A DNA stretch of 64,000 nt from Lepidodermella squamata (taxonomy: Eukaryota; Animalia; Gastrotricha), in contig JBLDXI010000029.1 in the NCBI GenBank assembly GCA_047495785.1, positions 3,782,001 through 3,846,000 of the forward strand, written 5' to 3'. Shown here one piece after another: positions 7,700 to 53,552 of this stretch. The notes below the pieces were generated by a model. That model was not told the DNA's origin, made no database searches, and saw nothing but the letters and a program-made list of their open reading frames with translations. The first letter of the stretch is position 1, and the number at the start of each line of letters is the position of its first letter. Made by a program: the position numbers and the translations under genes.

Positions 7700-8449
7700 T
7701 CAGTTTTTAGCTGAAACCTCACTCCAGAACTGGGTCAAAAACACCTTCATAAAATCGTGACGCTGCTGAGCCAGTTGGCGCGCAGATTCCGTCTTCATCA
7801 TAGCCGACAAATGCAGCAGCTTCTCATAGACATGCCCAATCGCATCACCGCCTTTTGGCTTAACAGCCGACGCGTTGTACTGCTCAGCCGTTGGTTTCTC
7901 AGCCACGTAATTCTCCGGCTCAGTAAACTGCGAAATCACGCCTCCAGTCGCCCCAGCATAGGCGAAACACCTAGCCAAACCCGCGGCGCCGATCGCGTCT
8001 AAACGATCAGCGTCCTGGACAATCATGAATTCAATCGTCGAGCAAATCGCTGGTTTCGACTGATTCGCCTCCAACTCTTTACGGAACGACATGTTAGCGA
8101 CAATTTGGAGGCACGAGTCTTTTTCGTCGTGCGAAAGGCCTGGAATTTTGTCGAGAATCGCCAGGATGTGCTGGCGTTGAACTTCGACGCTTTTCGTGTA
8201 CTTGAAATCGCCGACATCGTGGATGAGCGCGGTGATTGCGACGACTTTTTCGTTGATTTTCAAGCTGCTATCACGGACCTGTTCCATAGCGACTAGACGT
8301 AGGGCGTTTGATTTAACGCGTTCGATGTGGCTGTAATCGTGGGAGGCGTCTTGCTTGTTGTCTTCCAGGTAGATTTTGACTAGCTGCTCGGTTGTTCGAA
8401 GCATTTCAGAACTCAGTAAGTTATCAGTCGCTGAACAAGCATTAACCAT
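7700..8449 (-). CDS. HD-domain metal-dependent phosphohydrolase (YpgQ-like), intronless
   Basis: Motifs DASHDYSHIERV, ALIHDVGDFKY, IVQDADRLDAIGAAGLARCFAY, HVYEKLLHL and RHDFMKVFL. Confidence 0.9.
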   Translation of the reverse strand: MVNACSATDNLLSSEMLRTTEQLVKIYLEDNKQDASHDYSHIERVKSNALRLVAMEQVRDSSLKINEKVVAITALIHDVGDFKYTKSVEVQRQHILAILDKIPGLSHDEKDSCLQIVANMSFRKELEANQSKPAICSTIEFMIVQDADRLDAIGAAGLARCFAYAGATGGVISQFTEPENYVAEKPTAEQYNASAVKPKGGDAIGHVYEKLLHLSAMMKTESARQLAQQRHDFMKVFLTQFWSEVSAKN

Positions 8450-9406
8450 CTTTCGGCGTCTAAATACTCCTACAAGTTAGTGGAAAAATAATTAAACTTG
8501 AACAATAAGGTAAATTTAGCTGAATAATTATTAAAAAAATGACCTATAGCAAGAGCTGTCATTGATAGAAACAGCATACTATAGCGAGTACTGTATCAAT
8601 TTTATTGTATGTGAAAAAGTCAAGATAACAAAAAAGTCACAACGCATAATATATAATATGGCAACACATTTTACACACGTGCGAGAGAAAAAACAGTGCG
8701 ATGTGTATATGAGTGTGTTAGTACAATTTTTCATTCATAAAATAATGATAGTGGTCGTGATGATTCATACGCCGCCATACCGTAGCGCAGGATAAGTTTG
8801 AACACTTCGGCTTTGCAGGTGAATAGGTTTGTAACGCCGTATGATAAAAATACAAGGTTTGTTGCATAAAATTCCCCGTCTCATGCGCTGTCGAATGGCG
8901 TGAGTCCCAGGGCGATTGGAGAAAAAACTTGATTTTTGATCCTCGAACAGTGTGGAATAAGGTGGTGGGGCCGGTGGATATACGGTACCGCCGAGTTGGC
9001 CCTGTAGTTTAGCAAAAATGTCCCTCGACCAAAGGGTCCTCCTTGTGCTTTTATTATAATTTTCCCAGCTCATCCTCACCAGTTGGAAGATCCTATATTC
9101 CACCCCGAATGGTTTAGTCAAAAATTGCAGGTATAACACTTTTTTTTTATTTTTAATTTCTAACCAAGAAAAAAAATTTTTTCATGACAGCATCGTGGCC
9201 TTATCGAATTTCGATCCCAGCATTGCCCAAATTAAAGTCTTGAGCTTGAGATGAAATATCAAATATCAGGTTTTTTCAAAGAGTACAACAGTCTGGTATC
9301 GGATTTAAAGAATTCAGCATGTCGAATGTCTTCAAATGCTTTTATTTGAACTTGATAATAAAACGAAGGGTTTACGTTACGGAAATGTCAATGAAATGTC
9401 CCTGAA

Positions 9407-9825
9407 TTATTTCCTAGCCATTGCAAACAGTGACAGTCTGCCGTTTTTGCAGACAGTATCGACGATTTGCTTGCAAAACGGAGAAATCTGACAGATGCCT
9501 GTTAGCAACTGCTCTCGGCAAGACAGTCCCGGTTTGGCTTGGTCGTGAGATACCGTTTCCTTCTTATCCAAAATCCGCAATTCGTCATTCATGTCGGACA
9601 ATCCAGGAAAATCCTCTATTTCCTTCTCGACGCCAGCTGAAACAATGGAGAAAATTCAATATTAGGCAATGTCTAAGAATATGTAAAATAAAACTTGCAT
9701 TGTTCTGGTTCGTTAGCCTCAGGTATCGCATTGATGTACAAGAAATTTTGGGCCAGGCCTTCCGTCACGAGTAGAGCGAAATATACTGAAAACAGCATGA
9801 GAACGAGAGAAAATTGGGACGTCAT
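9407..9825 (-). CDS. Secreted prepropeptide, 118 aa, 2 exons with a GC-AG intron
   Basis: Exon 1 (9825-9699) encodes the signal peptide MTSQFSLVLMLFSVYFALLVTEGLA. A 62-nt intron GCAAGT...TTTCAG (phase 1) joins in frame to exon 2 (9636-9407): acidic pro-region, KK site, 4-Cys peptide. Confidence 0.7.
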
Positions 9826-10567
9826 TTTGGTTTATATAATCAAGCCATTTCACCAAATTCTAAGTTACAGAAAAATAACATTAAAATATGAGCTTTTTTG
9901 TCATTCCTTGTCTCTTGAGGCCTTCGAGGTCATTTGGTATTTTCTTGCGCTAGTAAAGAATTTCATTTCGCTAATTAAAACTGGAACACATGGGATTCCA
10001 GAATTTCTGGACTCGTTGGGGATTGGTATCTTACAGAAGCTGAAATATCGTAAAAAGCGAAAATTGGAACTGAAATGTGAACCGAGGAAATGACATGAAT
10101 AGTTGCGCAGACATTGCCAGGGATTAATTGCCCATGATTTTCCGTTCAATGACGCTCAATATTCATCTAACGGCCCCCAGCTCATAGAAATTAGGTTGCC
10201 CATAAATAGCGCCAGTGGGAGTCTCACGTGGTCAACATTGCATTCTCAAGAACTTAATTTTCCCCTACTCGAGTTTTTTTTACGGCTCTCTCCACTCAAG
10301 TGTTAAGCCCTCGAAAGACAGCGTAGCTTTTAGGCGAAACCATAATCAGCGTTACTTCATAGTTCTGCATACAGTTTCTCAACTTACTGCGGTAATTCCC
10401 ACGCTCATTTGCATATGAAATCACTAATTATGAGAGCATCAGCTGTTTTAATATATTCATAAAATTAAATATTTCTGAGTATTCGTAAACCATGTTCATT
10501 TTGTTTCACTTTGACGAACCGAATAAAACAGAAGGAAGAATCCATAAAAACTACAAATTTTTCCAAA

Positions 10568-11548
10568 TCAGAGCTGCTTAACATCGCACGAAGTTGTAAT
10601 TACAACAGCTGATTCAGATTTTTTAATCAGTGGTTCGTTGTTATTTCCCGAAGAAATCTCCTCATTGGAGCTCTCGCCAGATTTAGCAGCATTCCTCGCC
10701 GGTGATAGTTGATTCGCCACTTTACGAAAATGGATGCACCTGAAAATCGCAAAAACAAGAGCACCAGCGCTGAGAAGCAACAGTACGGCCAATACACCTA
10801 AGGTCACTGATAACGGCTGGATTCTCAATTGATTCCCAGGTCCATTTTCCGCCGGGCCATTTCGCGTTGGCTCAACTTTAACAGGAGTTATTTGGGCAGA
10901 TCGAGTTTCAGGCTTGATGTGGCAGTAGTACTGAAGCACCTTTTCCTGGCCATTGTTCGCCGACCGGCCAGCCCCGTACCATTTCGCCTGGTAACCAGGT
11001 GGGCAGGTAAAATCGCCAGTCACAGGGTTAGGAACATCATCGGATATTGAATTGCCTTCCCGTTGAATCTGGTAGAAACCGCCCAGCTCAGATCCGTTGA
11101 AGAACACGAAGCAAATCGATTGTTTACACGTAACGGGCCGAATGTAGCGATCCTCACTGTCGAGAAAACTCGGCGATAATAGGTTGAAAACGATGGTCTC
11201 ATAGCCAAGCGGGCATGTGAAGGCGTTTGTGACTGGGTTCATCGCTTCAATGGTCGGTAGCTTGCCGTATTTCTCATCGCATTTGAAGAACATCCCGCCA
11301 AACGGGTCGAAGCCTCGTGTCTTAGCGAGGCATAAATGCGTCTCTAAGATTTCTTCCTGGTAGTCCGAAACAGGACTCGCGACCAGGAAATCGGTGGCGT
11401 TATCTGGGCAGTAGGCGTTTTTGTCGTCAAACGTGTTGGCGATCAAAGCGCCGCGGCGATACGAGTACAAGCCGCGGAAGCTTGTTGCCTCGCTGCCTGG
11501 CAGAACTAAGCACCATAATAAAAGAAATGCCGGACGTAGGGGTGTCAT
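10568..11548 (-). CDS. Type I membrane protein with an MPEG1 P2-like ectodomain and short tail (kinase-less paralog of the RTK at 31918-34097)
   Basis: Likely ATG 11548 (signal peptide MTPLRPAFLLLWCLVLPGSEA). Repeats FGGMFF..NPVTNAFTCPLGY and LGGFYQ..NPVTGDFTCPPGY; TM LSVTLGVLAVLLLLSAGALVFAIF; cytoplasmic tail of about 57 aa. Confidence 0.8.
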   Translation of the reverse strand: MTPLRPAFLLLWCLVLPGSEATSFRGLYSYRRGALIANTFDDKNAYCPDNATDFLVASPVSDYQEEILETHLCLAKTRGFDPFGGMFFKCDEKYGKLPTIEAMNPVTNAFTCPLGYETIVFNLLSPSFLDSEDRYIRPVTCKQSICFVFFNGSELGGFYQIQREGNSISDDVPNPVTGDFTCPPGYQAKWYGAGRSANNGQEKVLQYYCHIKPETRSAQITPVKVEPTRNGPAENGPGNQLRIQPLSVTLGVLAVLLLLSAGALVFAIFRCIHFRKVANQLSPARNAAKSGESSNEEISSGNNNEPLIKKSESAVVITTSCDVKQL

Positions 11549-12497
11549 TGTTCCGTAACCATTGCAGCTCCTGAGTCTTGCATTAACTTGGCGCCGTATT
11601 ATACTTAGAGCCTGAATGCTTGTTGTCAAGTATCTGGCTTATTCACTATGGTCAGCAAGCGTATCGCGTCAACAGCCTCGTAAATTAGACCTATTAGTGA
11701 AGGGCAAAATAATCTTTCAAGGCATAAAACAATCAAATTCAGCCTGGTTTTTTTGAATATACCTCTGGGAAAAATTATTATAAAAACAAGGCTTGAGCGT
11801 TTTATTGAAGAGCAGAATCATTTCTAACCACAATCTTAAAATAGGATTAATTGAATGGAATTAGGGAGAGACACGGCGTTTCCCTGAGACTCAATGTGAA
11901 AGACCTCTGATTTTTCTCTGATGGAACCAGACATGATTGAAAATGAAATAAAATTGATTGTTTTTGACCTTGTTGAACACAATAATTGTTTCAAGTATCG
12001 TAGTTAAATCCCATTTATCGATTTCATGTCACTGCGTCTATTATCAAGCTTTTGATAGGTAAAGTAGCACCAAGTACTGGCCGTGCCGTTTTTTATTCTA
12101 AAAATTGAATGAATATGTGGGCGTGCTTTGATTTTCGAGTATCACGAAATATCAATTAACCATTTTTTATTGACCATCTCAGTGCAAATATCGATCGGAT
12201 ATAACCAAAAAAAGGCTCGAACTCCGAAATTTCATTTTTTCGAATTCACTACTCCTCTTTGCCAAAAAAAGAATTCGATAACAAAACAATTGCTTTGTCC
12301 GATAAAAAAAAATTCCAGCTTAAAACGTTTGTATTGTGAACCTTGTTCTTTGCTTGTTTTGCCGAGAAGTACACGGGATACAGTAGTTTTTATGCCGCGC
12401 TCGGTTAAGCACGAATGTATTACACAAGCTACGGTGAGCATTAAGTGATAAAAAAAAGTGAAAGCCAGAGCAACAAAATTACGCATATAATGAAAAT

Positions 12498-14718: not shown

Positions 14719-15876
14719 ATGAAATTTCACTGGTTAGCCATTTTTCTAGCTGAATATGCAGCTGCGAAAGTTCTGACGAGAGCTGACGAATTCTTTGAAG
14801 CATGCCCTAATGTGAGGCAAGAAGTTTATAGCCCTGGTTGTTCGATTGGGCAGGTGGAGAGCGCGGCATCAGGCCGTAATACGGCAATCTGTGACCAGAC
14901 ACCAATTGCAGCAAAATTTTATGCCAGCCGTTTTCACAGAATCGACGAGCCAGCTGAAACGTTCACTGTAGCTGGGTCTCTGAGACTTGAATGGCCTTTA
15001 ACCTGCAGAGATTTCAACAACACTGGAATAGATGAATATTCCCTCAAGTTGAATGAAGACCGATTTTGGACGCCTGGCGTCTACCACAGTAACACGATTG
15101 ACAACTTCGGGATGAGTGGGGATACATTCACGAGCCGCTTTATGGCCTTCTTCAACCTGAATACCTCTGATTTTCGAATTCTTTGGCAAAAATATGGAAT
15201 TTTTTCTTCGTCATGCTCTATGGACTTTGAGAATTTCCCATTTGATGAGCAATCGTGCAGTATCGAATTTTGCCTTCAGGAGAACCGAAATGCAGCAACG
15301 CTTGTTATAGGGGACGGAATACAGATCCTTGGCGGTTTCATGTCACCCAGCAGCAACTGGCAGGTTGTCAATTCCTCGACCCGCACTGATGCTGTGACTT
15401 TCAGTGGAGACAGGGGAAATATTGTATTTTCTATCAAATTCCGGCGTAGACCGGACTTTTACGTTGTTGCGCTTATTCTGCCATGCTTTTTCCTATCAAC
15501 TCTAGAAATCGGTTCAGTCATGATGGAGCCAAAAATGGCTGATCGGCCTGTTTTTGCTGTCACCCTCCTCCTAGCGTTTGTGTTCCTGCAAAGTGAAATT
15601 TTGCAATGGATACCGCCTAAACCTGATCGCTGCTTCCTCAGGACATATACGAACCTTTGCGCTTTGTTCGCTTGGATGAACACGGTGTACACTCTGGTTA
15701 CATTATGCATCGCCCGTTCGAGCATAACCATTGCAAAGTCGACTTATCAAGTATTTTCGCTATCGATAAGCGCCTTACGGATCGTCGATATAGTCGCAGT
15801 AACTCTGGGAAGTCTCTTCCTCATTTCTATAAATTCTATCGCGATCGACACCGCTAAAAAGAGCGAGTATCTGTAA
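14719..15876 (+). CDS. Intronless atypical Cys-loop ligand-gated ion channel subunit, copy 1
   Basis: Signal peptide, FWTPG (loop A), Cys-loop CSMDFENFPFDEQSC, pre-M1 RRRPDFYVVALILPC, four TM segments, very short M3-M4 loop. Confidence 0.9.
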   Translation: MKFHWLAIFLAEYAAAKVLTRADEFFEACPNVRQEVYSPGCSIGQVESAASGRNTAICDQTPIAAKFYASRFHRIDEPAETFTVAGSLRLEWPLTCRDFNNTGIDEYSLKLNEDRFWTPGVYHSNTIDNFGMSGDTFTSRFMAFFNLNTSDFRILWQKYGIFSSSCSMDFENFPFDEQSCSIEFCLQENRNAATLVIGDGIQILGGFMSPSSNWQVVNSSTRTDAVTFSGDRGNIVFSIKFRRRPDFYVVALILPCFFLSTLEIGSVMMEPKMADRPVFAVTLLLAFVFLQSEILQWIPPKPDRCFLRTYTNLCALFAWMNTVYTLVTLCIARSSITIAKSTYQVFSLSISALRIVDIVAVTLGSLFLISINSIAIDTAKKSEYL

Positions 15877-19060: not shown

Positions 19061-19450
19061 GCAGGTAAGCTTCGATCGACGGTGCCATCCTTCCTGAAAA
19101 AGCCCAATTAAAAGCTGGGCCAAACTTCTGCTAATTGGTTGTTTGAGGTGGACAAATAACAAGCTAACGTTATGCACTTAGCCACACTGGAAGAGTTGCG
19201 GTGCAATTGCTTTTGCACGCAGATATTGATAATCGAACACAGAGCTGGAAAACCAGCAGAAATGACGGCCCAGGTGCGTGGAACATTTTGGCTTAGGAAG
19301 CAGTCGAAAATTGAAGGAAATGGTTGTTTAGTAGGAAATTGCAAAATCGGTGCGTAGGAAATCCTGCAAAAGTTATCCAACTCTGATCGAACATTTGTTT
19401 TGGCATCATGGCATCGTTCATGAACTGCTACGAAATATCTATCAGAGGAT
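19061..19450 (+). pseudogene. Decayed copy of the GT32 last exon ahead of channel copy 2
   Basis: GCAGGT..CGATCGACGGTGCCATCCTTC..GCTAATTGG..GCTAACGTTATGCAC matches about 14403-14525, with stops and an internal insertion. Confidence 0.6.
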
Positions 19451-19460
19451 CAAATCAAAA

Positions 19461-20615
19461 ATGAAGCTTTGCTGGTTCGCGGTTTATCTGGTTAAATTCG
19501 TTGCTTCCGAAGTTCGAACGAAAGCTGACGAATTCTTTGAAGCATGCCCTAATGTGAGGCAAGAAGTTTATAGTCCTGGTTGTTCGATTCGGCAGGTGGA
19601 GGATGCGAAAGCAGGCCACATTACGACAATATGTAATCAGACAAGAATCGCAGCGAAATTTTTCCCCAGCCGTTTTCACAGAATCGACGAGCCAGCCGAA
19701 ACGTTCACTATAGCTGGGTCTCTGAGGCTTCAATGGCATATCAATTGCACAGATTTCAAACCTGGGTCGGATGATTATTCCTTCAAGATAAATGAGGACC
19801 AATTTTGGACGCCTGGCATCTACCACAGTAATACGATTGACAACTTCGGGATGAGTGGGGATACATTCACGAGTCGTTTCATGGCTTTATACTTACCTAA
19901 TACTTCTGAGTTCGAATTTGTCTGGCAAAAATACGGGATTTATTCTTCGTCCTGCTCTATGGACTTTGAGAAGTTCCCTTTCGATGAGCAATCTTGTAGC
20001 ATCGAGTTTTGCCTTCAGGAGAACCGAATGGCAGCAACGCTTGCTATTATGGATGGAATCCAGATCCTCGGAGGTTTTATGTCACCTAGCAGCAACTGGC
20101 AGGTCAAAAACTCTTCGACTAGCACCGATGCGATAACTTTCAATGGAGACAGGGGAAATATTGTATTTTCTATCAAATTCCGGCGTAGACCGGACTTTTA
20201 CGTTGTTGCGCTTATTCTACCCTGCTTTTTCCTCTCGACTCTGGAAATCGGTGCAGTGATGATGGAGCCGAAAATGCCAGACAGGCCTGTTTTTGCTGTC
20301 ACCATTCTACTCGCGTTTATATTTCTGCAAAGCGAAATTTTGCATTGGATACCGGCCAAACCTGATGGATGCTTCCTTAGGACATATACCGATCTTTGCG
20401 CTTTATTCTCTTGGTTGATCACCGTTTACACTCTGGTCACAACATGCATCGCCCGCTCGAGCATAACCATTGCAAAGTCGAATTTTAAAGTCTATTCGTT
20501 ATCGATTAGCGCCTTACGGATCGTCGATATAGTCGCAGTAACTCTGGGGAGCCTCTTCCTCATTGCTTTAAATTCTATTGCGATCGACACCGCTAAAAAG
20601 AACGAGTATCTGTGA
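19461..20615 (+). CDS. Intronless atypical Cys-loop channel subunit, copy 2
   Basis: ATG 19461 (MKLCWFAV) by alignment to copy 1; CSMDFEKFPFDEQSC; four TM segments. Confidence 0.9.
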   Translation: MKLCWFAVYLVKFVASEVRTKADEFFEACPNVRQEVYSPGCSIRQVEDAKAGHITTICNQTRIAAKFFPSRFHRIDEPAETFTIAGSLRLQWHINCTDFKPGSDDYSFKINEDQFWTPGIYHSNTIDNFGMSGDTFTSRFMALYLPNTSEFEFVWQKYGIYSSSCSMDFEKFPFDEQSCSIEFCLQENRMAATLAIMDGIQILGGFMSPSSNWQVKNSSTSTDAITFNGDRGNIVFSIKFRRRPDFYVVALILPCFFLSTLEIGAVMMEPKMPDRPVFAVTILLAFIFLQSEILHWIPAKPDGCFLRTYTDLCALFSWLITVYTLVTTCIARSSITIAKSNFKVYSLSISALRIVDIVAVTLGSLFLIALNSIAIDTAKKNEYL

Positions 20616-21123: not shown

Positions 21124-22976
21124 TCAGCAACCTTCCGCAGGGCAAGCTGTACAATAAAACAATTCAACATTTTTAGCCGCGGTCACATTATCGCGGTCAC
21201 ATACTGTTGTCGATTTCTGAAAGAAAACATAAGAATACTTGATATTCTCGAGTTGCTTTGAACTAACTTAGAAAGCAGTCAGGTCCAGTATAGCCTTTGT
21301 CGCACAAGCAGGTGTTTGGGGCGATGCAAGTGCCGCGTTGAAAGCATTTTTTCGGACAAGAAGCTAGGAAATGTATTTAAGCATGGATATTAGCGTGGCT
21401 CTCTATTCTCCATGGTTAGGATAAGCGTAATCGAGGCTTACGTGATTGACAGTCTGGAGCTAGCCAGTCAGATGTGCAACTGCATCGATTGGGCCGCACG
21501 CAAGTTCCGCCATTCGCGCAACCAGATGGGCAGATGGCTACGGTAAATTTAATTCTAGCTAAATCCTGACAAAGTGATTACGAGTGATTACGTGTATCGC
21601 AAAGCGAGCCAGTCCATCCAGGTCCACATGTGCAGATGTTGGAAGATTTACAAGAACCGCCTATCCCACAACTCGGAGTGCATGTGGCTTCAATAAAAGT
21701 AATGGCAAAATAAAACTACTGAATCAGTGTAAACACTGTTACATAAGAAAGTGCTCTTCTCAGTTGCTGTTTTTTTCTAGCATAACGAAATCTTCGACTT
21801 ACGTTTATCACATTTCCAGCCCGTCCAACCAGCCAGGCATGTGCATTGATAACCACCGATTTTGTTTAGGTCACCTGTACAGGTACCAGGAGCACAATTC
21901 GCCGGGCAGCTGATCTCTGAAAAGCCATTATAAGAATTTATTTAATAGCAGGCATTTGAAAATTGGAAATTGAAATCGAAAGATATCGGGTGAAAGTCAA
22001 TGTCAACCAATGTTTTTAGCCAGGGTGCGAAGTAGAAGGGTCATGAGATGTTGCGACACCTCTCTTCGTGGTGAAATCCTCCGGAAAGCTGAAAAAACCC
22101 TATAGTTTCTCCGGCTGGGCTCCAAAACACACGTCAGCTCCAGAACTCTACTTCGAACACTGTTTTTAGCTGTAAAAAGCAATTTACGGTTAATAAGCTG
22201 GCATTGCTGGCGGATAGTTGAAAGATGAGCAGCCGTCAGGGCTGCTTTGTAAAACGCGAGGCAAGCGTACTTGCTGTTGAACGAACCTGCGTAAGAATTG
22301 CCTGGACGCCTGCACAAAAAACCTTGCAAATAGCCAACGCCAGGAAAAAATCCTACCTGTAAGCGAGCGTGAGCGTCTGCGCTGTTACAACATTTGATAT
22401 TATTGGGACTGAACTGCTCAAGGACATGTTGCACATCACGTAATAACTCGACGCACTTGCATCATAGACATAAGCGACGAATTGCCACTTTGAAAAGTCG
22501 CATGGAATGTAATTATATGCTCTGTTATATGAATCGTCCCCAAATATCATGTTTGGTTGCATGTTGCTCCCGCTATTAGGGTTAAAGTTCCACAGCTTAG
22601 CTGTCATAGACGTTCCTGAGTAGAATTCATAAATTGCTGCACGATTCGGCACGTAGACGAAACCGGTGAATGTGAACGAGGACCCGCCAAAGTTGACAGC
22701 AGAGTTGTTAACTACTAACCAACTCGTTGTATCGGCCTTGTTCGTTTCATATGCAGTGTTCGGCAGGCCATCAGGGCCTTGGGTCAGCGATCCATTCGTT
22801 GAAGCAAACGTAGCGTGGACGTTGTTACCTGAAACATCCCTCAGTCCAAATAGGGCATTCAACGGCCAGTAAGCCACTGGGTTGGGCAAATTAGCTTGAT
22901 TATTCTTAAACTGTGCCACATACAACTGCGGAAGCACAGATGGCGTTGAACAAAGGACGAAAAACAACGTCAGCAT
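21124..22976 (-). CDS. Secreted LamG/pentraxin-like domain plus 4 EGF-like repeats, multi-exon, paralog A
   Basis: Signal peptide; [36 protein letters not shown]. One EGF per exon ([10 protein letters not shown].., [11 protein letters not shown].., [11 protein letters not shown].., [11 protein letters not shown]..); ends ..CPAEGC-stop. Confidence 0.8.
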
Positions 22977-27979: not shown

Positions 27980-29128
27980 TTAGATACTCCTTTTAGCGGT
28001 GTCGATCGCTATCGAATTTATAGCAATTAGGAATAGGCTTCCAATAGCGATTGCAAGTATATCGACGAAGCGTAGGGCGCTTATCGATACAGAGAAGATC
28101 CGATAACTTGACTTTGCAATCGTTTCGTTCCAGCGGGCGATGCAGATTGTGACCAGAGTGTAAACGGTGTTCAACCAAGCGAATAAAGCGCAAAGATTGG
28201 TATAGGTCCTCAGGAAGCATCGATCAGGCTTGGGCGGTATCCATTGCAAAATTTCACTTTGCAGGAAAACGAATGCGAGGAGTAGGGTGACAGCAAAAAC
28301 TGGCCGGTCCGGCATTTTCGGCTCCATCATAATTGAGCCGATTTCTAGAGTCGATAGGAAAAAGCATGGCAGAATAAGCGCAACAACGTAAAAGTCCGGT
28401 CTACGCCGGAATTTGATGGAAAATACGGCATTGCCCCGGTCTCCACTGCAAGTGACCGCGTCAGTGTACGTCGAAGAGTTTGTAATCAGCCAATTGCTAC
28501 TTGGTGACATGAAGCCTCTAAGTATCTGTATTCCGTCCCTGATAACAAGCGTTGCTGCATTTCGGTTCTCCTGGAGGCAAAATTCGATACTGCAAGATTG
28601 CTCATCAAAAGGGAATTTCTCAAAGTCCATAGAGCAGGACGAAGAAAAAATGCCGTATTTTTGCCAACGAATTTGGAAAACCGAGGTGTTCATGTGGTAA
28701 AAAGCCAAAAAACGACTCGTAAATGTATCACCAGTCATCCCAAAATGGTCAATCGTGTTACTGTGGTAGATGCCAGGCGTCCAAAATTGATCTTCAGCTA
28801 ATTTGAGGGAATAATCGTCCAAACCAGGGTTGAAATCCCTGCAATTAATACGCCATTCGAGCATCAGAGACCCAGCTATAGTAAAAATTTCAGCTGGTTC
28901 ATCGATTCTGTGAAAACGGCTGGCGAAAAATTTTGCCGCGATTTGTGTCTGATCACAGATTCCCGTAATGTGGCCTGCTCTCGCACTTTCCACCTGTCCA
29001 TTCAAACAATCAGAGCTATAAACGTATTGCCTTACTGTAGGGCATGTTTCAAAAAATTTCTCAGCTGTCGAAAGATCCTTAGAAGCAGCAAATTTAACTA
29101 GAAAAATGATATACCAGTAAAATTCCAT
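27980..29128 (-). CDS. Intronless atypical Cys-loop channel subunit, copy 3 (inverted)
   Basis: 382-aa paralog of copies 1 and 2 with the same Cys-loop and four TM segments. Confidence 0.9.
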   Translation of the reverse strand: MEFYWYIIFLVKFAASKDLSTAEKFFETCPTVRQYVYSSDCLNGQVESARAGHITGICDQTQIAAKFFASRFHRIDEPAEIFTIAGSLMLEWRINCRDFNPGLDDYSLKLAEDQFWTPGIYHSNTIDHFGMTGDTFTSRFLAFYHMNTSVFQIRWQKYGIFSSSCSMDFEKFPFDEQSCSIEFCLQENRNAATLVIRDGIQILRGFMSPSSNWLITNSSTYTDAVTCSGDRGNAVFSIKFRRRPDFYVVALILPCFFLSTLEIGSIMMEPKMPDRPVFAVTLLLAFVFLQSEILQWIPPKPDRCFLRTYTNLCALFAWLNTVYTLVTICIARWNETIAKSSYRIFSVSISALRFVDILAIAIGSLFLIAINSIAIDTAKRSI

Positions 29129-30896: not shown

Positions 30897-31267
30897 TCGT
30901 GCCTGAAGTAGAATTCATAAATCGGCGCTCAATTTGGCACATAGACGAAACCGGTGAATGTGAATGAGGACCCGCCAAAGTTTACTGCCGTCAACTACTA
31001 ACCAACTCGTCGTATCGGCCTTGTTCGTTTCATATGCAGTGTTCGCCAGGCCATCAGGGCCTTGGGTTATAGGGTTAGAACCCCAGCTGTTGAAGCGAAC
31101 GAAGCGTGAACGTCGTTCCCTGAAACATCCCTCAGTCCAAACAATGCATTCAACGGCCAGTAAGCCACTGGGCTGGGCAAATTAGCTTGATTATTCTTAA
31201 ACTGTGCCACATCAAACTGCGGAAGCACAGATGGCGTTGAACAAAGGATGAAAAATAGCGGCAGCAT
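30897..31267 (-). pseudogene. Truncated, frameshifted LamG-EGF exon 1 copy
   Basis: [29 protein letters not shown], then a frameshift and stop; cut off by the TIR element. Confidence 0.75.
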
Positions 31268-31917: not shown

Positions 31918-34097
31918 TTACTTGTACGTCCAATTGTTTAAAGCTATCGTATCACGTTTCTGTTCAACAATGTTTTGCGTATGTTGACAGTCCGATTCTG
32001 AAATATTCCAATCTCGGATAATCATAACTAAGCTAGAAAATGAAGGCCGTAGATCAAGGTCACGGTTCCAGCATGCTGAAATCACCTCATCGAACCTTAA
32101 AATAAAACACAATTATCTCCATGAATGTCATGACTTACAGTTCAAGGAACTTACAGTTTTGCAGGGCATCTATCAGGTTTAGCCAAGCGACCTTCAGCTT
32201 GCAAAAGGTTCACGATTTCAGTAGGCGACATCCCAGCGTAAGGTTTGACACCACCAGCAAAAATTTCCCACATCACCACTCCGAATGACCAGACGTCACT
32301 CTTCTCCTCAAAAACGCCTTTTAGCAAGGATTCAAGAGGATGCCAGGCGATGGGCAACGGTCTGTCGTAGTTAGCTGGTCTGTAGTAGTCGCAAGATACT
32401 AAATGCCGTGACATCCCAAAATCGGCGATTTTAAGCAATCCTTTCTCGTCCATCAAAACATTTCTAGCTGCTAAATCACGATGTATGAACTTATTTTCGG
32501 ACATATAGGCCATTCCATTTGCAATCTGGATGCAGTAGTTGAGCATATCTTGGTTAGTTAGATCTAAAAACTTGCTGCGAAGGTAATCCCTAAGATTCCC
32601 ATTCGCCATAAAAGGTACAACTAGATGAGGTTGGTCGAATAATAGCGAGATTCCTAGCAGTTCGATTACATTTGGATGATGAAATGTTTGCATGACATTA
32701 GCTTCTTTCAAAAGGTCCAACAAGTCCTCACGATCCCTGGATTTGTGAACTTTCACAGCTACCTTAATTTCGTGAGAATCAGGACCTGATTTCTCCGGGC
32801 GCCAGGTTGGCTGGAGCAAACGCATTGTAGCACTGTAAACAAAGCCGAAATTACCATCGCCGATCAATTTACCGAAAATTAATTGATCGTTTTGAACAAG
32901 AAAAGCCTCAGCCATTCGAGCGATATCTTCACTGCCACCTAGGTCGTTTACAACTTTTCGAACTCGCCCTTTCTCAGCTTCGTCGATTTCAGGCTTGGAA
33001 GTTTGAGTTGGAACCAAGTAAACCTCCCGTGTCCCTGATACAATCGAATCCATCTTGTCTTGATCGGCGAGTAACAAGCTTCGTAATTTAGCTCGATCGT
33101 TGGGGTTCACGCTCTTGAGGTTTTCAAATTCAGGCTTGACGTAGTATGTCCCAGTTGTTGACGTGGCTTGCGATGAACCGGGCTGTAACTTATTTTCCTG
33201 CTCATCCTTGTGGATTATTAAAAGTTTTTGCCTGTAAAATTGGCATTTTCTCGTGTATTTGAATAGACAACATAAGGAAATCGCGAGACACGACGCCAAA
33301 GTTGCTATAATTGGTAGGGTGATGACTGGTTTCAAGATGACTTCATCCTTCGACTCCACCCCCTTTAGATCTTCGACTCTAATTTGTCTGGTGAAGTTCG
33401 CCGTCTCGTTAAAATCAGTCTGAGTCGCTGTTGTAGTGAATTTGACCGTTGTAACTGATTTCAAACAGTAGAATTGCATAATTCTCGCGTGGTCGTCATT
33501 CGGAGCCCGTCCAGCGCCATACCAAACTGCATTATAATCAGCAGGGCAGTCATACTTGTTAGTAACTGGGTTTGAAACAGAATCAACACTCGCAGCACCA
33601 TCGCCTCTTTTCTGGAAAAACCCCCCTAGAGCCGAACCATATCGATAGTTGAAGCAAATCGTTTGAACACATCGAGACTGTACAGTTTCATTCCTTGCTG
33701 AACTGAAATATTTAGGGGACGCGACTGGTAGTGAAATTTTTCCCATCCCACCAGGGCAGGTCAACGCGTTTGTCATCGGGTTGACGGCATTGAACTTTTT
33801 CGCCTCGTTTTCGCAGGTAAAAAACATCCCGCCCAGGCTGTTTTGCGAGTCGCAAAGATTTTCCTTGGATAGACATAGGTGAACTTGCAACGTGTCGTCA
33901 TTAACATCTGAACCAGCATTTCCTACAAGGTAATCTTCAGCGTCCTTCGGGCAGTAACTAGAGTCGAATCCGGAATTGGCGATGATAATACCCGGGCGGT
34001 GTGAATAGATTCCTCGAAAATTTGATTGAGATACTTGACTTGAGATTGGATTGGCGAAAATTGAAATAGCAAAAAGGCTTATCACTAGTATGTTCAT
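31918..34097 (-). CDS. Receptor tyrosine kinase (MET/RON/RYK-like catalytic domain) with an MPEG1 P2-like ectodomain, about 706 aa, 2 exons
   Basis: Likely ATG 34097 (signal peptide MNILVISLFAISIFANPISS); TM VITLPIIATLASCLAISLCCLF; GDGNFG, VAVK, HRDLAARN, DFGMSR..DYY, SDVWSFG. A 59-nt intron (32154-32096) supplies subdomain XI, CWNRDLDLRPSF. Confidence 0.9.
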
Positions 34098-34676
34098 TTG
34101 CAGTTGTGAATGCGTTTTTTGTTTCAGACGAAAAGCATCGTCGAATGTGAGCAGCATGTTGTAGAATGAGTCAGTATTGTATCCATTTCCGGTAGCAAAT
34201 TTGCATAGCCAATTAGTTGTTTTCAACTGTCAGGAAATTAAAACCATACGTACGTAGAGAAATTCCGATCTTCATCGAGCACTCAATATGCTATTTCTAA
34301 GGGTTTATTTTATGATGTTGTTTACTTTGATCATGACTCATTTTTCATTGTAATAACAGGTTGACCCTCTTTTCGAGTGTTTATACTCATTTTACCAGCT
34401 AAATTTTCCAGTATGTTTGGAATCTTCATCCTGCCGAATAGTTGATGTTATTTCATCCATTTTTTGTCCGGAGAATTTCCTTTGGTTGGTGGGTCAAAAA
34501 GTCAAAAAAGAAAGATTAAGCAAATGAATCACAATCGCGTGCGGTTTTGGTGAATGAAAAAATGCCACGTGTAAACAATCCTCTCTCCTTATCACAGCTG
34601 GCCAGTATAAAGTCCAAGCTTACAAAGCCAGAATCCATTATACCGGCATTCAATTCAAAACAACTCGATTCATAGA

Positions 34677-35779: not shown

Positions 35780-38664
35780 TCAGCAACCTTCGGCAGGGCA
35801 ACCTGCGAAGAGCAAGATTTAAACTTTTTTGCCACAAAATTGCCGTCACATACTGTTTACGATTTCTAAAAAAAAACAGAATAATACATATTTTTCCGCT
35901 CTGTCAATAAACAAACTTTGAAAGCAGTCTGGGCCAGTGTAGCCGTCATCGCACAAGCAGGTGTTCGGGGCGATGCAAGTGCCGCGCAGAAAGCATTTTT
36001 TAGGGCACGAAGCTTTCGAAAAAACAATTGCAGTGATAAATCAGGGCATGTGAGAATAGAGTGATTTTTTCTTAAATTGTGTGATAAATCATTCTGACCA
36101 CCACCAATTTACCTATCACCGATTTACAAATCCGTCGACTTCAGACTCCAAATTTCGTGCTAAGGCCCGATCTGGCCAGAATTAGAAAGCTATAGTCAGC
36201 ATTGCTCAAAAAATTACCTAATTCTTTAGTTTACAGATTGTATATAATAGTTATTCTCAGTGGTTGAAACTTCGCTTTGGTGAATTCAAACGGTTGATGA
36301 AATTTAGCGCTAACAGTTTATTTCCGAGGTTTCGATTTCTAACAGAAATCATCTTCAGGGAGATGAAGTTGAATAGTTTAGGCGTAAAATCATAATTAAA
36401 ATCTTAAGGCGGATATTTTCATTGATGATTCATCAGACGAGTCAAGAAATAATTGCTTGATGAAACTTCAAGACTTACGTGATTGACAACCTGGAGCTAG
36501 CCAGTCCGATGTGCAGACACATCGATTCGGCCGCACGCAAGTTCCTCCATTCGCACAACCAGATGGGCAAATTGCTGTTAAATGAATAGATCGTGCAACG
36601 CATTTGCGAATACATTGCCGTTCATTACGTGTATCACAAAGCAAGCCAGTCCATCCCGGTCCACATGTGCAGCTGTTGAGAGATTTACAAACACCGCCTA
36701 TCCCACAATTCGGTGTACAAGTAGCTAAATGCGATGAAAGAATGGGTGAAAATCGGAGAGGGTAAAGGAAATGAGCGCATTTTCGCGGTATGGTACCTCC
36801 TAAAACATTATAACTGGAACCTCAATTTAGGGCTCAATTCCGGACCCCGCTTAGTTTCGTGCAGGTAAAAGTTTAAAAATTCCGCCTTTTCCCTCATTTT
36901 CTTCACGCAAGTTCAATAATTTTATTAAATTCTCTCTAAAAATATTTAATTAAATACAATTTAAAATTATTTAAAATATTTTCCATGGTAACGCATTTAT
37001 GGGGGGAATTTTGAAATTTTGCCAAGTCGGGTCGTCGCGTCGCCTGGCCTCCTCTATGTTGTAGCGCGAAAACTATGATAGATAGAGCACTTCTGTAAAT
37101 TGTGCTGAACTCAGCATGATCGAATTACTTAGAAACCGTTGAAAAAACAATAGGTCAGGAAAATCGACTTTTTTGTCCCTCCGGCGCTGGAGTACCCCCT
37201 TAGGGGAGATCTTGGGTCATCTTAGTCATCTCTCTGGATCTCTAACCGTAACACCTGGAAGCTTCTAATATTGATTTTCTTACTCCCCGGACTTGATTTA
37301 GTATTGAAAAGATCTTTTTGAGAGATCATAACCGCCCAAAGTCATTTGACAAGCTTGCATGGCAAGTTAGGGTGATCACCTGAGTCATCCTGTCCTAAGA
37401 CGGGGAAGAAGATCTTTTGAGACCACCAGTGTGAAGTTGTTCTTTCAAAAAGATCTTTTCAATACTAAATCAAGTCCGGGGAGTAAGAAAATCAATATTA
37501 GAAGCTTCCAAAATTATTGAACTTGCGTGAAGAAAATGAGGGAAAAGGCGGAATTTTTAAACTTTTACCTGCACGAAACTAAGCGGGGTCCGGAATTGAG
37601 CCAATTTAGGCATGGCACAGTTTTAAGCACACTCATTAAGCTCTCAATCCGAAACACTCCAACACTCTAAACTAAAGCAGGTAAGAGGCTGCTCCACTTA
37701 CGTCTATCGCATTTGAGCCCGGTCCAGCCAGCCTGACATGTGCATTGATAGCCTCCGATCTTGTTCAAATTACCGATGCACGTGCTGGGTACGCAGTTGG
37801 CAGGACAGGTTATCTCTTCAGAGTAAACTTGATATGATGAATCTCGTTATATCACGAAATAACTTACGATTTATCAACTGGCACTGCTGGCGTAACAAAG
37901 TCAGCTGTGATACGGTGAAAACTGATTTGTACAATGATAAGCATGCGTATCTGTTATTGTAGGCTAAATTTCCGAGATATCTGTAAAAATCGGCATTTGA
38001 TGTCCCGTTAAGGATTTCTTAATTCAAGCATATACCTATAACCGAGAGTCAAATACTGTCCGGTTGATGGCGTGTTTGTGGCTACAAGTTGACTCACAGT
38101 GAGATCGCAAAAAACGTAGTGCGTCCCATTCGAGTTGTAGACCAATGAAATAAATTGCCAACCGGTCATATTACAACTAAAATTAGAAACATGTTGTGAT
38201 CCAGAGTTGACAGTGTTGGCGAACAGCAGGTTAGAGTTGATTATGTTATCATTAGTGGGATGCAGGTGCCATAGGTGCGTATTGAAAGCTCCCGCTGATC
38301 CATTCCACCATTCAAAAATCGAGCCACGTGCCGGTGCGTAAACATAAGATGAAAGTGTGAATGACGAAACACCAGGGTTGACCCTCGAATCTAAGATTTC
38401 AATCCAACTGTTACTGTTACCTTTATTGGTCTCATACGCCGTGTTGTTAGCACCAAATGGCCCTTGGGTTAGTGGACCACCCACTGTCTTGTAAGAAGCA
38501 TGCATTGCGTTGCCTGAGATGTCCTGCAGGCCGAAGAGAGCATTCAGCGGCCAATAACCAGAAGCCGGAGGTAAATTTGCTTGGTTCATTAAGAACTGAG
38601 CCAGATATATCTGGCAGTTGATAAGCGGCAGTGAAGCCACGATTAGGTACGAAAGTATGTTCAT
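35780..38664 (-). CDS. LamG-like plus 4 EGF secreted protein, paralog B
   Basis: ATG 38664 (MNILSYLIVASLPLINC), YWPLNALFG, same exon series as 21124-22976, ends CPAEGC-stop. Confidence 0.8.
36832..37601. mobile_element. Intronic MULE/Mutator-like non-autonomous element, 770 bp
   Basis: TIRs of about 90 bp (GCTCAATTCCGGACCCC...), 9-bp TSD CAATTTAGG at 36823-36831 and 37602-37610, inner inverted repeat 37256-37321 with 37445-37510. Confidence 0.85.
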
Positions 38665-39207
38665 TTTTCGCAAACTTCTTCTTCTGCTTCCCGTCTGCAA
38701 TGGAAAATTCTTTAATAATCTGTTGGTCGTTCGGAACGGACTTGCTCTAAACCGGAGGTTGTTCCCTGTTGCTATGCTAGCCCGTATAGAATTTTTACTG
38801 CAACCTGTAATCTCGGCATTTAGATGATTGACAGGCATTCTATAAATGCCTGTGAGTAAAACTTTCCCCTAGTTTCATCATGCACGAACACCTAAGATCG
38901 ATGCAAACCATGACTGAAAAGGCGGAGACTTCTCGCTTCTCGCAATACTATTTAACCTATGTTCGTGGTAAGCAGAGAAAAATTACCTATATGAATGAAA
39001 AATTCATTTTGAAAAATTCTGAACTTATTCTGAAAAATTCAAAGTCTTGCGCGGTGGAAGATTTAGTGCGCACTTGCACCCAAAATGTGGGCTGATCGGT
39101 GATGCGCGTGATAATGTCCCTGTTTAGTTTTCACTCGGGAATTCATTCCGCTGGGCTGAGGCCGCTCCTCAATCGTAAAGGAAAGAGTTTCTGTACTTTG
39201 TGCCAAT

Positions 39208-50846: not shown

Positions 50847-53552
50847 GAAATGAAATGAAATGAAATGATTTATTTGTTTCTCTTCCCCGCGACTAGACGT
50901 CTGTACCCTTTCGGGTTTTGAGGAAGGCGAAGGCAAGGCAAACCAAAAAGAAAAATTTTAGTCACCCTCCCCCACAACCGAGAAAATCTTACTTTTGTTA
51001 TAAAATTCAAAATCTTCCAGAGACTCAACTATTTTTCGCCATTCAACTCGATCTAATGCCGTTGTTTCGGTAAATGTCCAGTCAACAGTTTTTTCGGAAA
51101 TTTCGGTTACATTACTACCATCTTTACGAGGTCTGCCACGGGACCCGTCGGTTTTTTTTCTTATTATATTTTCTGTTGTAAGTCCTACTTTACTTAAACT
51201 TCTTTCAACCGTATCTAGCCATCTAGTTCGAGGTTTCCCCACCGGTCTCTTCCATTCCTTAGGCGCAACCCACCTATAAAGGTCGTAGACTGGCCCCGGT
51301 GGTATCGGTTCACCTTTGTCGTCGACATAGGTCTCCATCCTTATTATATGACCTAGGTAATTAAGTCGTTGTTTTTCAATTAATCTACCGACTTCAATTA
51401 TTCCGCCACACATTGATAGTCTGATATCTATGTTGGGAATATAGTCCATTACTGTAATTCCTAAAATGCATCGCAGCCACTTATATTCTTGGGTATTTAG
51501 CGTACTTTCGTCGTCTTCCGTAATATTCCATGACTCGCAGGCATACATCATAGCTGGAATAATAACGCATTTTAATATTTTTAATTTTACCGCCAAAGAG
51601 ACATGTTTTCGGTTGCACATAAATTTACTTATCGCGCCAAAGCAACTACCTGCTTTCGCAATGCGCGCTTTAAGTTCCTCGCCGATTTTGCCATCATCAG
51701 TTATAAAGCTACCTAGATACTTGAACGTGCTTACTTTTTCAAGATTGCGACCCTCTAATTGTAAATTATATTTTTCATTTTTCTTTGGGTCACCACCTAT
51801 AATCATATATTGAGTCTTCGCCGCGTTAATTTTGAGACCCAATTCTTTACAAGCCGCGTCGAAAATTCCTAATAACAACTTAATTTCTTTGTGATTCATG
51901 CCTAACAGCGTTCCATCATCGGCGAAAGCCAAAATATTCAGAAAATTTTTTCCCAACGGAAAGCCGACCTTTTCATTAGCGACTTTTTCACAGATTTTAT
52001 TGAAGGTAGTAATAAAAAGAAGAGGAGATAAGGGGCATCCCTGCCTGAGGCCTCTATTCACGTAGAAAAATTCTGATAACTTCCCATCGATTTTAACTGC
52101 CACCTCATTTTTCACGTATAGACTCTTAATGGCTGCTATTAATTCAGGGTTTACTTTCATTTCTTCGAGAGTTTCCCATACTTTTTTTCGGTCGACCAAG
52201 TCGTACGCCTTTTCTAAATCAATAAAAACTAGATGTAATTCCTGATGAAATTCTATAATTTTCTCAATGACTCGTCGTAACACAAATATGCAATCTCTGG
52301 TTCCTTTAAGAGGCTGAAAACCAAATTGAAATTTGGAAATGTTCCTACCCAACGAGGCGCGCAATTTTCTCTCCAGAATAATTGCATACAGTTTACTAAT
52401 TACACTTAACAGAGTTATACCTCGGTAATTTTTACATTGCGACTTCTCCCCTTTGTTTTTATAAAGTGGGGTTATAATTGCTGAGCACCAGTCATCCGGA
52501 ATTTTCTTTTCCCTCCAAATTCGATTCATTAAATTTAAAAGCCATTCCTTGTTTTCCTCATCTAAAGCCTTAATCATTTCGGGTCGAATTTCGTCTATTC
52601 CTGGGGCTTTACCGTTTTTCATATGGTCAATGGCACTCCTAATTTCCTCGATAGATATTCCTTTTATATCAGAGTTCGAAGCCATATTTAGGGGCTCATC
52701 TGGGGTCTCCTGGAATAGGTCAGTGCCCTCTAAGAGCTCTTTAAAATAGTCCTTCATGGTGTCTAGAATTTCCTCAAGTTCGTCTACAAAAGATCCTTGC
52801 TCAGTTTCTAAGGTTTTTGGGCCTTTGCTAGACTTATTCGTTCCCCTAAGCTTTTTTACTTTGGCCCAGAATTTTTTGAGGTCTTCCCATTCCGAAGATT
52901 TTTCCCCAAGAGAATTCAATTCACTAAAAATTTCAATTTCCTGATTTTTTTGAAGTCGCTTAACCATTTTATTTCGAATATTGCGCATCTTCACGTATTC
53001 TTCCTTCGGTATGAGGCCTTTCTGGTATTTTGAGAAAGTTTCTTTCGTCTTTTTACAAATATCATAGGCCTCAGGGTGCCACCATGGTGGTTTTTCTCTC
53101 CCTCTGCCCACTTTTCTTTCCCCACAGGCTTCTCTTGCGGCGTCTAAGATCGCCGTTTTGGTTTTAAGCCAATTTTCCTCGGTCTCTATCGCTTCATCAG
53201 AGTTATCTGACCTTCTTACTTTAATTTTTTCGTTATAATCGAGTTTAATTTCCTCTTCTCTCAGGCTCTGGTGTTTAATAACTTTCTTGGCAGGTTCAGC
53301 GGGTTTACCTAGAGGTTTTATATAAATTTCGCCGATGATCAAGCGATGGTCGGACTCGAAGATAGGATCTTCCAGCACTAAACAGTTGTTAAACAAATTT
53401 TTAATCGATTTATCTATTAAAATATAATCTATGAATGACTTATTTTTCCCCCTTTTCCATGTGTAGCCACAATTTGGGAAGAACGTATTAACGAAGCATA
53501 AATTATTCGAGCTCGCAAAGTCATGCCATTTCAACCCCTTGTCGTTCCGAAA
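50847..53552 (-). mobile_element. 5'-truncated RTE-clade-like LINE with an uninterrupted EN(partial)-RT ORF (50958-53534)
   Basis: NTFF, IDYIL, SDH, NYRGITL, FIDLEKAYD, GLRQGCPLSP, AFADD, YLGH..RM, GKPRTRW. 3' tail (TTTCA)n; 12-bp TSD TCTTTTTAAAAT at 50835-50846 and 53553-53564. Confidence 0.92.

Follow-up and report, generated by a model that had tools for sequence, protein, structure and literature searches.

The kinase-less gene and its transcript

The window, meaning the whole stretch of 64,000 nucleotides of Lepidodermella squamata DNA that was analysed, contains two related genes for membrane proteins on its minus strand. One is a kinase-less paralog gene (hereafter KL, window 10568-11548), and the other is a receptor tyrosine kinase gene (hereafter RTK, window 32151-34097). 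The open reading frame of KL occupies 10568..11629(-); from the in-frame ATG at 11548 to the stop codon at 10570-10568 it encodes 326 aa. The product is a type I membrane protein with a signal peptide, a Cys-rich ectodomain of 191 aa, a stalk, one transmembrane (TM) helix and a tail of 57 aa. The features of the two genes are as follows, with the evidence for each in brackets.

11691..11692 (-): AG acceptor for trans-splicing of KL (in cDNA run X2, the match of a contig breaks off at 11692)
11549..11690 (-): 5' UTR of KL (sequence; cDNA depth up to 11692, zero beyond)
10568..11548 (-): complete coding sequence of KL, a single exon (sequence; cDNA contigs; C46 copy of the same length and frame)
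11486..11548 (-): signal peptide of KL, residues 1-21, probable from composition (hydrophobic core, ending ...GSEA)
10913..11485 (-): P2-type ectodomain of KL, residues 22-212 (sequence search, AF2 model, structure search)
11117..11200 (-): repeat-2 loop of KL, residues 117-144, short and acidic (positional equivalent of the lipid-binding hairpin of perforin-2)
10814..10912 (-): stalk of KL, residues 213-245, rich in Pro, Thr and Gly (sequence)
10742..10813 (-): single TM helix of KL, residues ~246-269 (Kyte-Doolittle mean over 19 residues up to 2.74)
10571..10741 (-): cytoplasmic tail of KL, 57 aa, rich in Ser and acidic residues (sequence)
32151..34097 (-): first exon of RTK (ATG at 34097; P2 ectodomain at 33459-34025, then TM, and kinase to the exon end)

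Transcription of KL can be seen in run X2. This run consists of cDNA, as indicated by SMART adapter and poly(T) at loose ends, zero intergenic depth and the skipping of a neighbouring intron. Its contigs at KL cover bins 10506-11674 only, with zero depth at 9838-10505 and beyond 11841, and the end of one of them, ~10569-10570, roughly coincides with the stop codon. Within the KL ORF, these contigs gave no reported splice joint. The depth of X2 is contig-based; therefore, the 3' end and poly(A) site of KL are left undefined by the cDNA. The stop at 10568, for which the sequence-only reading had asked for a check against transcripts, is thus borne out as far as contigs reaching about the stop and lacking a splice joint can do so, while the poly(A) site was not seen.

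At the other end of the transcript, an X2 contig departs from the genome at 11692, exactly where an AG stands, and 21 foreign letters follow. This 21-letter leader occurs 34 times in the genome, compared to 0 occurrences of a reversed control; several of the copies lie in tandem arrays of ~680 bp, and each is followed by AG/GT (AG/GTATGT), i.e. a GT donor. The leader copies, each with a donor, are thus spliced-leader RNA genes, which implies that the KL mRNA is trans-spliced. The genome-encoded part of the mature mRNA begins at 11690, its 5' end. A literature search with the leader sequence matched no paper. Examples of the spliced-leader genes are found at these positions.

G000:C17:1137309-1142024: spliced-leader genes
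C19:1472968-1476087: spliced-leader genes
C54:2837691-2839197: spliced-leader genes

A second copy of the region exists on C46, and both KL variants (window and C46) were found in one DNA run at similar depth; letters of the C46 type are present in the cDNA too. From these results, KL is a real, intact, transcribed and trans-spliced gene.

Several smaller features surround KL. Its 5' UTR contains an upstream ORF of 12 codons, 11583-11545(-), whose TGA overlaps the main ATG (as ATGA), a layout that permits termination-reinitiation. A small two-exon gene lies at 9327-9850(-), with a TATA near 9836, an ATG at 9825, exon 1 ending at 9699, a GC-AG intron at 9698-9637 (the joint being taken from cDNA loose ends), an AATAAA near 9347 and poly(A) at 9327. 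Its product is a secreted protein of ~115 aa with 4 C-terminal Cys and without a Pfam match. The transcribed stretch 9327-9837 was considered as a 3' exon of KL and ruled out, having its own TATA, ATG, signal peptide, GC-AG intron and poly(A). In X2, cDNA depth is very high at the neighbouring HD-domain gene (7700-8449).

Identity of the ectodomain

Both sequence and structure comparisons point to the P2 domain of perforin-2/MPEG1. When the KL ectodomain was searched with phmmer against all PDB chains, only perforin-2/MPEG1 was matched, at its P2 domain (E 1.7e-5, 6sb1). A profile of the five family members in the genome reached E 2e-6 to 6u2j, and only MPEG1 chains passed. The AF2 model of the ectodomain, based on an alignment of 31 sequences, has a pLDDT of 88.9 and a pTM of 0.87, and is all-beta with nine long strands. 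Comparison of this model with 48,161 PDB representatives, without a prefilter, gave as the best match 6sb1_A, the mouse P2 crystal structure (Z 9.8, rmsd 3.1 A over 114 residues, 24% identity). In all, 8 chains reach Z 2 and only 2 reach Z>=5, both of them MPEG1, the next non-MPEG1 chain being at Z 4.3. A first AF2 model from 5 sequences had a pLDDT of 71 and weak Foldseek matches, with 6sb1 still the best at Z 10.1. Foldseek also places P2 first for the KL ectodomain. Two other searches contributed little: a word-indexed protein search with the whole KL protein and with the RTK ectodomain, which depends on shared 5-mers and reaches proteins of a restricted length range only, gave no match, and the look-alikes of KL in the ESM Atlas, with a best score of 0.81, were uninformative. 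Pfam holds no model covering the P2 domain.

The ectodomain consists of three pseudo-repeats (ectodomain positions 1-59, 60-123 and 124-191) of the type GG-aromatic ... NPxTxxxxCPxGY ... C. Repeat 1 is degenerate in the KL clade of the 31-sequence alignment, and since the structural match covers repeats 2-3 only (ectodomain 60-191), repeat 1 was assigned by its sequence motif. The P2 domain of perforin-2 is a pseudo-threefold beta-prism (PMC6989145), and the three repeats of KL fit such a prism. The ectodomain contains 8 Cys (residues 47, 73, 90, 112, 141, 146, 182 and 209) and N-glycosylation sequons at N50 and N151. The 8 Cys, conserved throughout the KL family, would form the inter-strand disulfides typical of P2 domains.

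In mammalian P2, a long basic beta-hairpin gives affinity for anionic lipids (PMC6989145). Between the first CPxGY and the GG motif that follows it, there are ~39 aa in KL; in MPEG1, the figure is ~61 for mouse and ~64 for human. The KL loop is acidic, and the pI of the ectodomain is 5.0. The KL ectodomain is a P2 domain that lacks the long basic lipid-binding hairpin, being ~22-25 aa shorter at that place.

Outside of the ectodomain, KL resembles little else. A Pfam scan of the protein returned no match at all, neither MACPF nor kinase, and there is no MACPF before its P2: the mature protein begins straight at the P2 repeats. The tail has no Tyr, no recognised domain (Pfam) and no recognised sorting or signalling motif. 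In a genome-wide search with stalk, TM and tail, only the C46 copy was similar, and the part beyond the last cysteine showed no similarity to the C-termini of the MACPF and P2 ORFs of the genome. The sequence-only reading had given KL a TM with a short tail and no MACPF domain. Both descriptions stand, with one hydrophobic stretch at ~246-269 followed by 57 aa, and with no MACPF found by Pfam.

Relationship of the two ectodomains

The RTK ORF, 32151-34226(-), encodes a tyrosine kinase domain (PK_Tyr, 3e-73, Pfam) after its own signal peptide, ectodomain and TM. The BLASTP alignment of KL with this ORF has 82 of 192 positions identical (43%) and 60% positives (E 5e-49), and is colinear with three small gaps. 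All 8 ectodomain Cys are invariant across five family members in the genome, KL and RTK included. The two statements from which the present analysis started, that the ectodomains align colinearly and that the aligned cysteines are kept, therefore hold, and every motif listed in their support is visible in the alignment. Beyond the last cysteine, KL and RTK are no longer homologous in stalk, TM or intracellular part: stalk, TM and tail of KL give a local score of 32 against RTK, compared to 26.9 +/- 4.1 for shuffles, of which 42/300 reach 32. Within the ectodomain, identity is lowest in the hairpin-equivalent loop, at 21%, compared to 43-55% elsewhere.

A distance of 21 kb separates the two genes, which share a strand, and the pair is kept in the collinear C46 block. 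In an arbitrarily rooted maximum likelihood (ML) tree of 35 P2 domains, whose bootstrap fell short of full convergence, the ectodomains of KL and RTK form one clade (100/100) with a long stem and ~0.8 changes/site per branch. The P2 domain of an ORF with ADP-ribosyltransferase-like (ART) and Sushi parts is sister to this clade (97/94), and all external sequences fall outside. The alignment and the tree suggest that the two ectodomains are the products of an old, lineage-specific duplication of one module. A complex prediction for the KL and RTK ectodomains scored 0.00 and was counted neither for nor against an interaction.

The second copy and selective constraint

The collinear second copy of the window region, G000:C46:415001-475000, has 87-94% DNA identity with it and a dS of about 0.2. 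The two copies could be divergent haplotypes or homeologues. Between the KL copies, changes are purely synonymous in 36 codons and alter the amino acid in 14. The dN/dS of KL against C46 (Nei-Gojobori) is 0.09 overall, 0.04 in the ectodomain and 0.25 in stalk, TM and tail; for RTK, by the same method, it is 0.11 overall, 0.03 in the kinase and 0.25 in the ectodomain. Purifying selection on KL, which had been read from the kept cysteines, can now be given as a measured value. The nonsynonymous to synonymous counts in the ectodomains are 5/30 for KL and 12/13 for RTK (Fisher p 0.008, with small counts). The KL ectodomain is thus more constrained than that of RTK, its ratio being about as low as that of the RTK kinase domain.

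Rearrangements between the C46 block and the window were observed around window 20.7-31.4 kb. The KL coding sequence (94.4%) at one point seemed oddly more diverged from C46 than its flanks (96-98%), but this dissolved, as the whole block is at 92% over 8.7 kb.

The P2 family in this genome and elsewhere

The close P2 family of the genome is of three kinds: KL, RTK and one DUF7587-Sushi-P2 ORF. The last of these, at G000:C46:1797628-1801116(+), is an ORF of 596 aa in an open frame of 917 aa, with a DUF7587, a Sushi repeat and a C-terminal P2. Its DUF7587, which is ADP-ribosyltransferase-like, was matched at E 2.9e-5, slightly short of the Pfam cut-off; a single copy of the ORF was found. More distant P2-like domains follow MACPF on C14, where three stand in tandem, and on C30; further P2-like domains are found in ORFs of C73 and C10, with a fusion to collagen on C10. 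No TM was found after P2 in any of these distant ORFs (C14, C30, C73, C10). Matches to MACPF number at least 23 in the genome.

Outside of this genome, 1.84 billion representatives were searched with a profile, and 130 proteins were retrieved at E <= 1e-3. The best of them scores 142 bits, compared to 240-345 within the family, which indicates that no KL or RTK orthologue is present among the representatives. No match to the RTK kinase was present among the 130. MACPF is present in 18 of the 127 proteins scanned; the partners in others are PA14, trypsin, TIR, RCC1, astacin, dockerin and bacterial Ig, and many of the 130 are short secreted proteins with P2 only. A hydrophobic stretch after P2 was seen in 2/130, namely a poly-Phe run and a stretch in a 714-aa bacterial-Ig protein. 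With only those two stretches among the 130 proteins, the layout of signal peptide, P2, TM and short tail is without a counterpart there. As neither the KL nor the RTK architecture was seen in an outgroup, KL may be either the ancestral stand-alone receptor, as the sequence-only reading had suggested, or a derivative by kinase loss.

The P2 domain has been called unique to MPEG1 in reviews (PMC10781884). The P2-like domains in 130 representatives, with their varied partners, indicate that it is not confined to MPEG1. A literature search found no paper combining P2 with a tyrosine kinase.

Comparison with known systems

The P2 domain of perforin-2/MPEG1 (6sb1, 6u23) shares with KL its fold, the GG-aromatic ... 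NPxTxxxxCPxGY repeats and the conserved Cys, and in both proteins it is directly followed by stalk, TM and short tail. Unlike MPEG1, KL has no MACPF before P2, no EGF-like linker and an unrelated tail. In sequence, canonical MPEG1 is not its nearest relative; secreted proteins lacking a TM, either MACPF-P2 or P2-only, are closer. From the class of receptor tyrosine kinases KL differs in that its transcript contains no cytoplasmic tyrosine-kinase domain. By architecture, then, KL is neither an MPEG1 nor an RTK, and its P2 fold lacks the hairpin hallmark.

Kinase-less relatives of receptor kinases exist in other systems. BAMBI is a kinase-less pseudoreceptor of the TGF-beta type I class, encoded by a separate gene, with a short non-catalytic tail, and it enters receptor complexes. 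KL is like it in being a separate gene, in having an ectodomain homologous to that of a receptor kinase and in its short non-catalytic tail; it differs in having a tyrosine kinase as its relative and an unrelated ectodomain fold. The likeness is one of architecture. The plant receptor-like proteins CLV2 and TMM have LRR ectodomains, stand beside Ser/Thr receptor-like kinases and signal through adaptor kinases; kinase-less paralogs of this sort are frequent where a genome has large, shuffled families of receptor kinases. With these, KL shares a kinase-less paralogous ectodomain, a TM, a short tail and a large, shuffled family of receptor kinases, but its ectodomain is a P2 and its relative a tyrosine kinase. 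TrkB.T1 and soluble VEGFR1 are kinase-less forms of receptor tyrosine kinases that modulate the full-length receptor; they are splice isoforms with identical ectodomains. In contrast, KL is a separate gene, is only 43% identical to RTK and has its own TM.

In KL and RTK, P2 by itself makes up the entire ectodomain of a membrane protein, which in one case carries a tyrosine kinase and in the other does not. This recasts P2 as a portable recognition module and provides a natural pair for asking what a hairpin-less P2 binds. KL also illustrates how the large, shuffled receptor-kinase repertoire of a little-studied lineage yields kinase-less relatives. At this point, its value is that of a well-defined candidate rather than of a mechanism.

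Possible roles of the kinase-less protein

It might be thought that KL only appears to be kinase-less, being spliced to a distant kinase exon or representing a decaying fragment of an RTK gene. RTK genes are abundant on C29, with a same-strand tandem array at C29:3732-3759 kb, which gives this view some footing. Against it, the last codons are covered by cDNA contigs as far as about the stop, with no splice joint reported in the ORF, and tblastn with the whole RTK found no other kinase-like stretch in the 64-kb window or in the preceding 20 kb. The nearest same-strand kinase exon (C29:3758268-3758882) is 33.7 kb downstream of KL and has its own TM end and juxtamembrane part behind its own ectodomain ORF of 417 aa, so that it belongs to another receptor; two independently transcribed genes (9327-9850 and 7700-8449) stand between. 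The earlier statement that no kinase exon follows KL is upheld by these results. Decay is excluded by the dN/dS of 0.09 with both copies intact, and the view as a whole is hardly credible.

The remaining readings accept KL as a membrane protein without a kinase and differ in what it would bind and for whom. Our preferred reading, held tentatively and at a little below an even chance, is that KL may be a non-catalytic P2 recognition receptor acting independently of RTK. Its P2 prism would bind an extracellular target, such as a microbial or cell-surface component. Having no enzymatic output, it would rely on its short tail, rich in Ser and acidic residues, to serve as a tether or uptake receptor. 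It would work in parallel with RTK on a target that is related but probably not identical, and would not be a dedicated decoy. The same module is found on pore-formers, proteases, PA14, TIR, ART-like and collagen proteins and on a kinase, which argues that P2 is a portable target-binding domain. Independence is favoured by the acidic loop with its 21% identity, by a stalk, TM and tail that are unrelated to RTK and unique in the genome, and by the stronger constraint on the KL ectodomain than on that of RTK. The divergence of the loop is no proof of different ligands, and the fact that the two genes are kept as neighbours in both copies is also compatible with a working pair. Such a pair is what the sequence-only reading had in mind: KL would be a pseudoreceptor that binds the same ligand or surface as RTK and serves as decoy, dominant-negative or co-receptor. 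As sister paralogues (100/100, 43% identity) of the same topology, on one strand 21 kb apart and with the linkage kept in the C46 block, the two are suitable partners; KL is transcribed, lacks a catalytic domain and tail Tyr, and is constrained strongly enough in its ectodomain to imply that it binds something specific. What speaks against a pseudoreceptor is that there is no stalk or TM homology to drive heteromerisation. A decoy for the same ligand is also mildly disfavoured by the hairpin-equivalent loop being the most diverged part and differing in charge, and by the deep split of ~0.8 changes/site per branch. We regard the pseudoreceptor as possible but rather unlikely, and as the less probable of the two. 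More speculative, and improbable at present, is a scheme in which KL and RTK would be two arms of surface sensing derived from the targeting domain of a pore-former. Both would recognise one multivalent surface, microbial or membrane, with a hairpin-less P2 prism; RTK would signal by clustering on it, and KL would set the threshold by competition or by co-clustering. If it were true, the two would be an immune-type receptor/pseudoreceptor pair without a described counterpart. Very unlikely, finally, is a role of KL as a membrane dock for secreted MACPF proteins or other effectors, in which it would contribute the P2-TM half in trans to a machine like that of MPEG1 and keep a pore-former at the host membrane. 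The order of P2, stalk, TM and short tail does equal the C-terminal half of the MPEG1 layout (PMC10781884), and the genome has its at least 23 MACPF matches, with the MACPF-P2 genes found here ending without a TM. However, no MACPF gene adjoins KL, and its tail region has no similarity to any MACPF or P2 ORF of the genome. Moreover, the MPEG1 ring is held by MACPF-MACPF and CTT-hairpin contacts (PMC6989145), and KL has neither the hairpin nor a recognisable CTT.

Other receptor genes and features of the window

Genome-wide, at least 71 tyrosine-kinase matches were found from 385 candidates. A tandem array of RTK genes with a different ectodomain is located at G000:C29:3732374-3758882(-) and C46:400326-421562(-), 34-60 kb from KL.

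Within the window, three paralogous single-exon ORFs at 14719-15876(+), 19350-20615(+) and 27980-29128(-) encode proteins of ~385 aa with an extracellular N-terminal part and several hydrophobic helices towards the C-terminus, and look like relatives of Cys-loop ligand-gated channels. A family of signal-peptide ORFs, 40-70% identical and with no kinase nearby, is found at window 22353-22976(-), 30908-31267(-) and 38008-38838(-) and at L045 4393-5028. At 50958-53534(-), the window contains an intact ORF of 858 aa from a non-LTR retrotransposon, in which an endonuclease and a reverse transcriptase were identified by eye.
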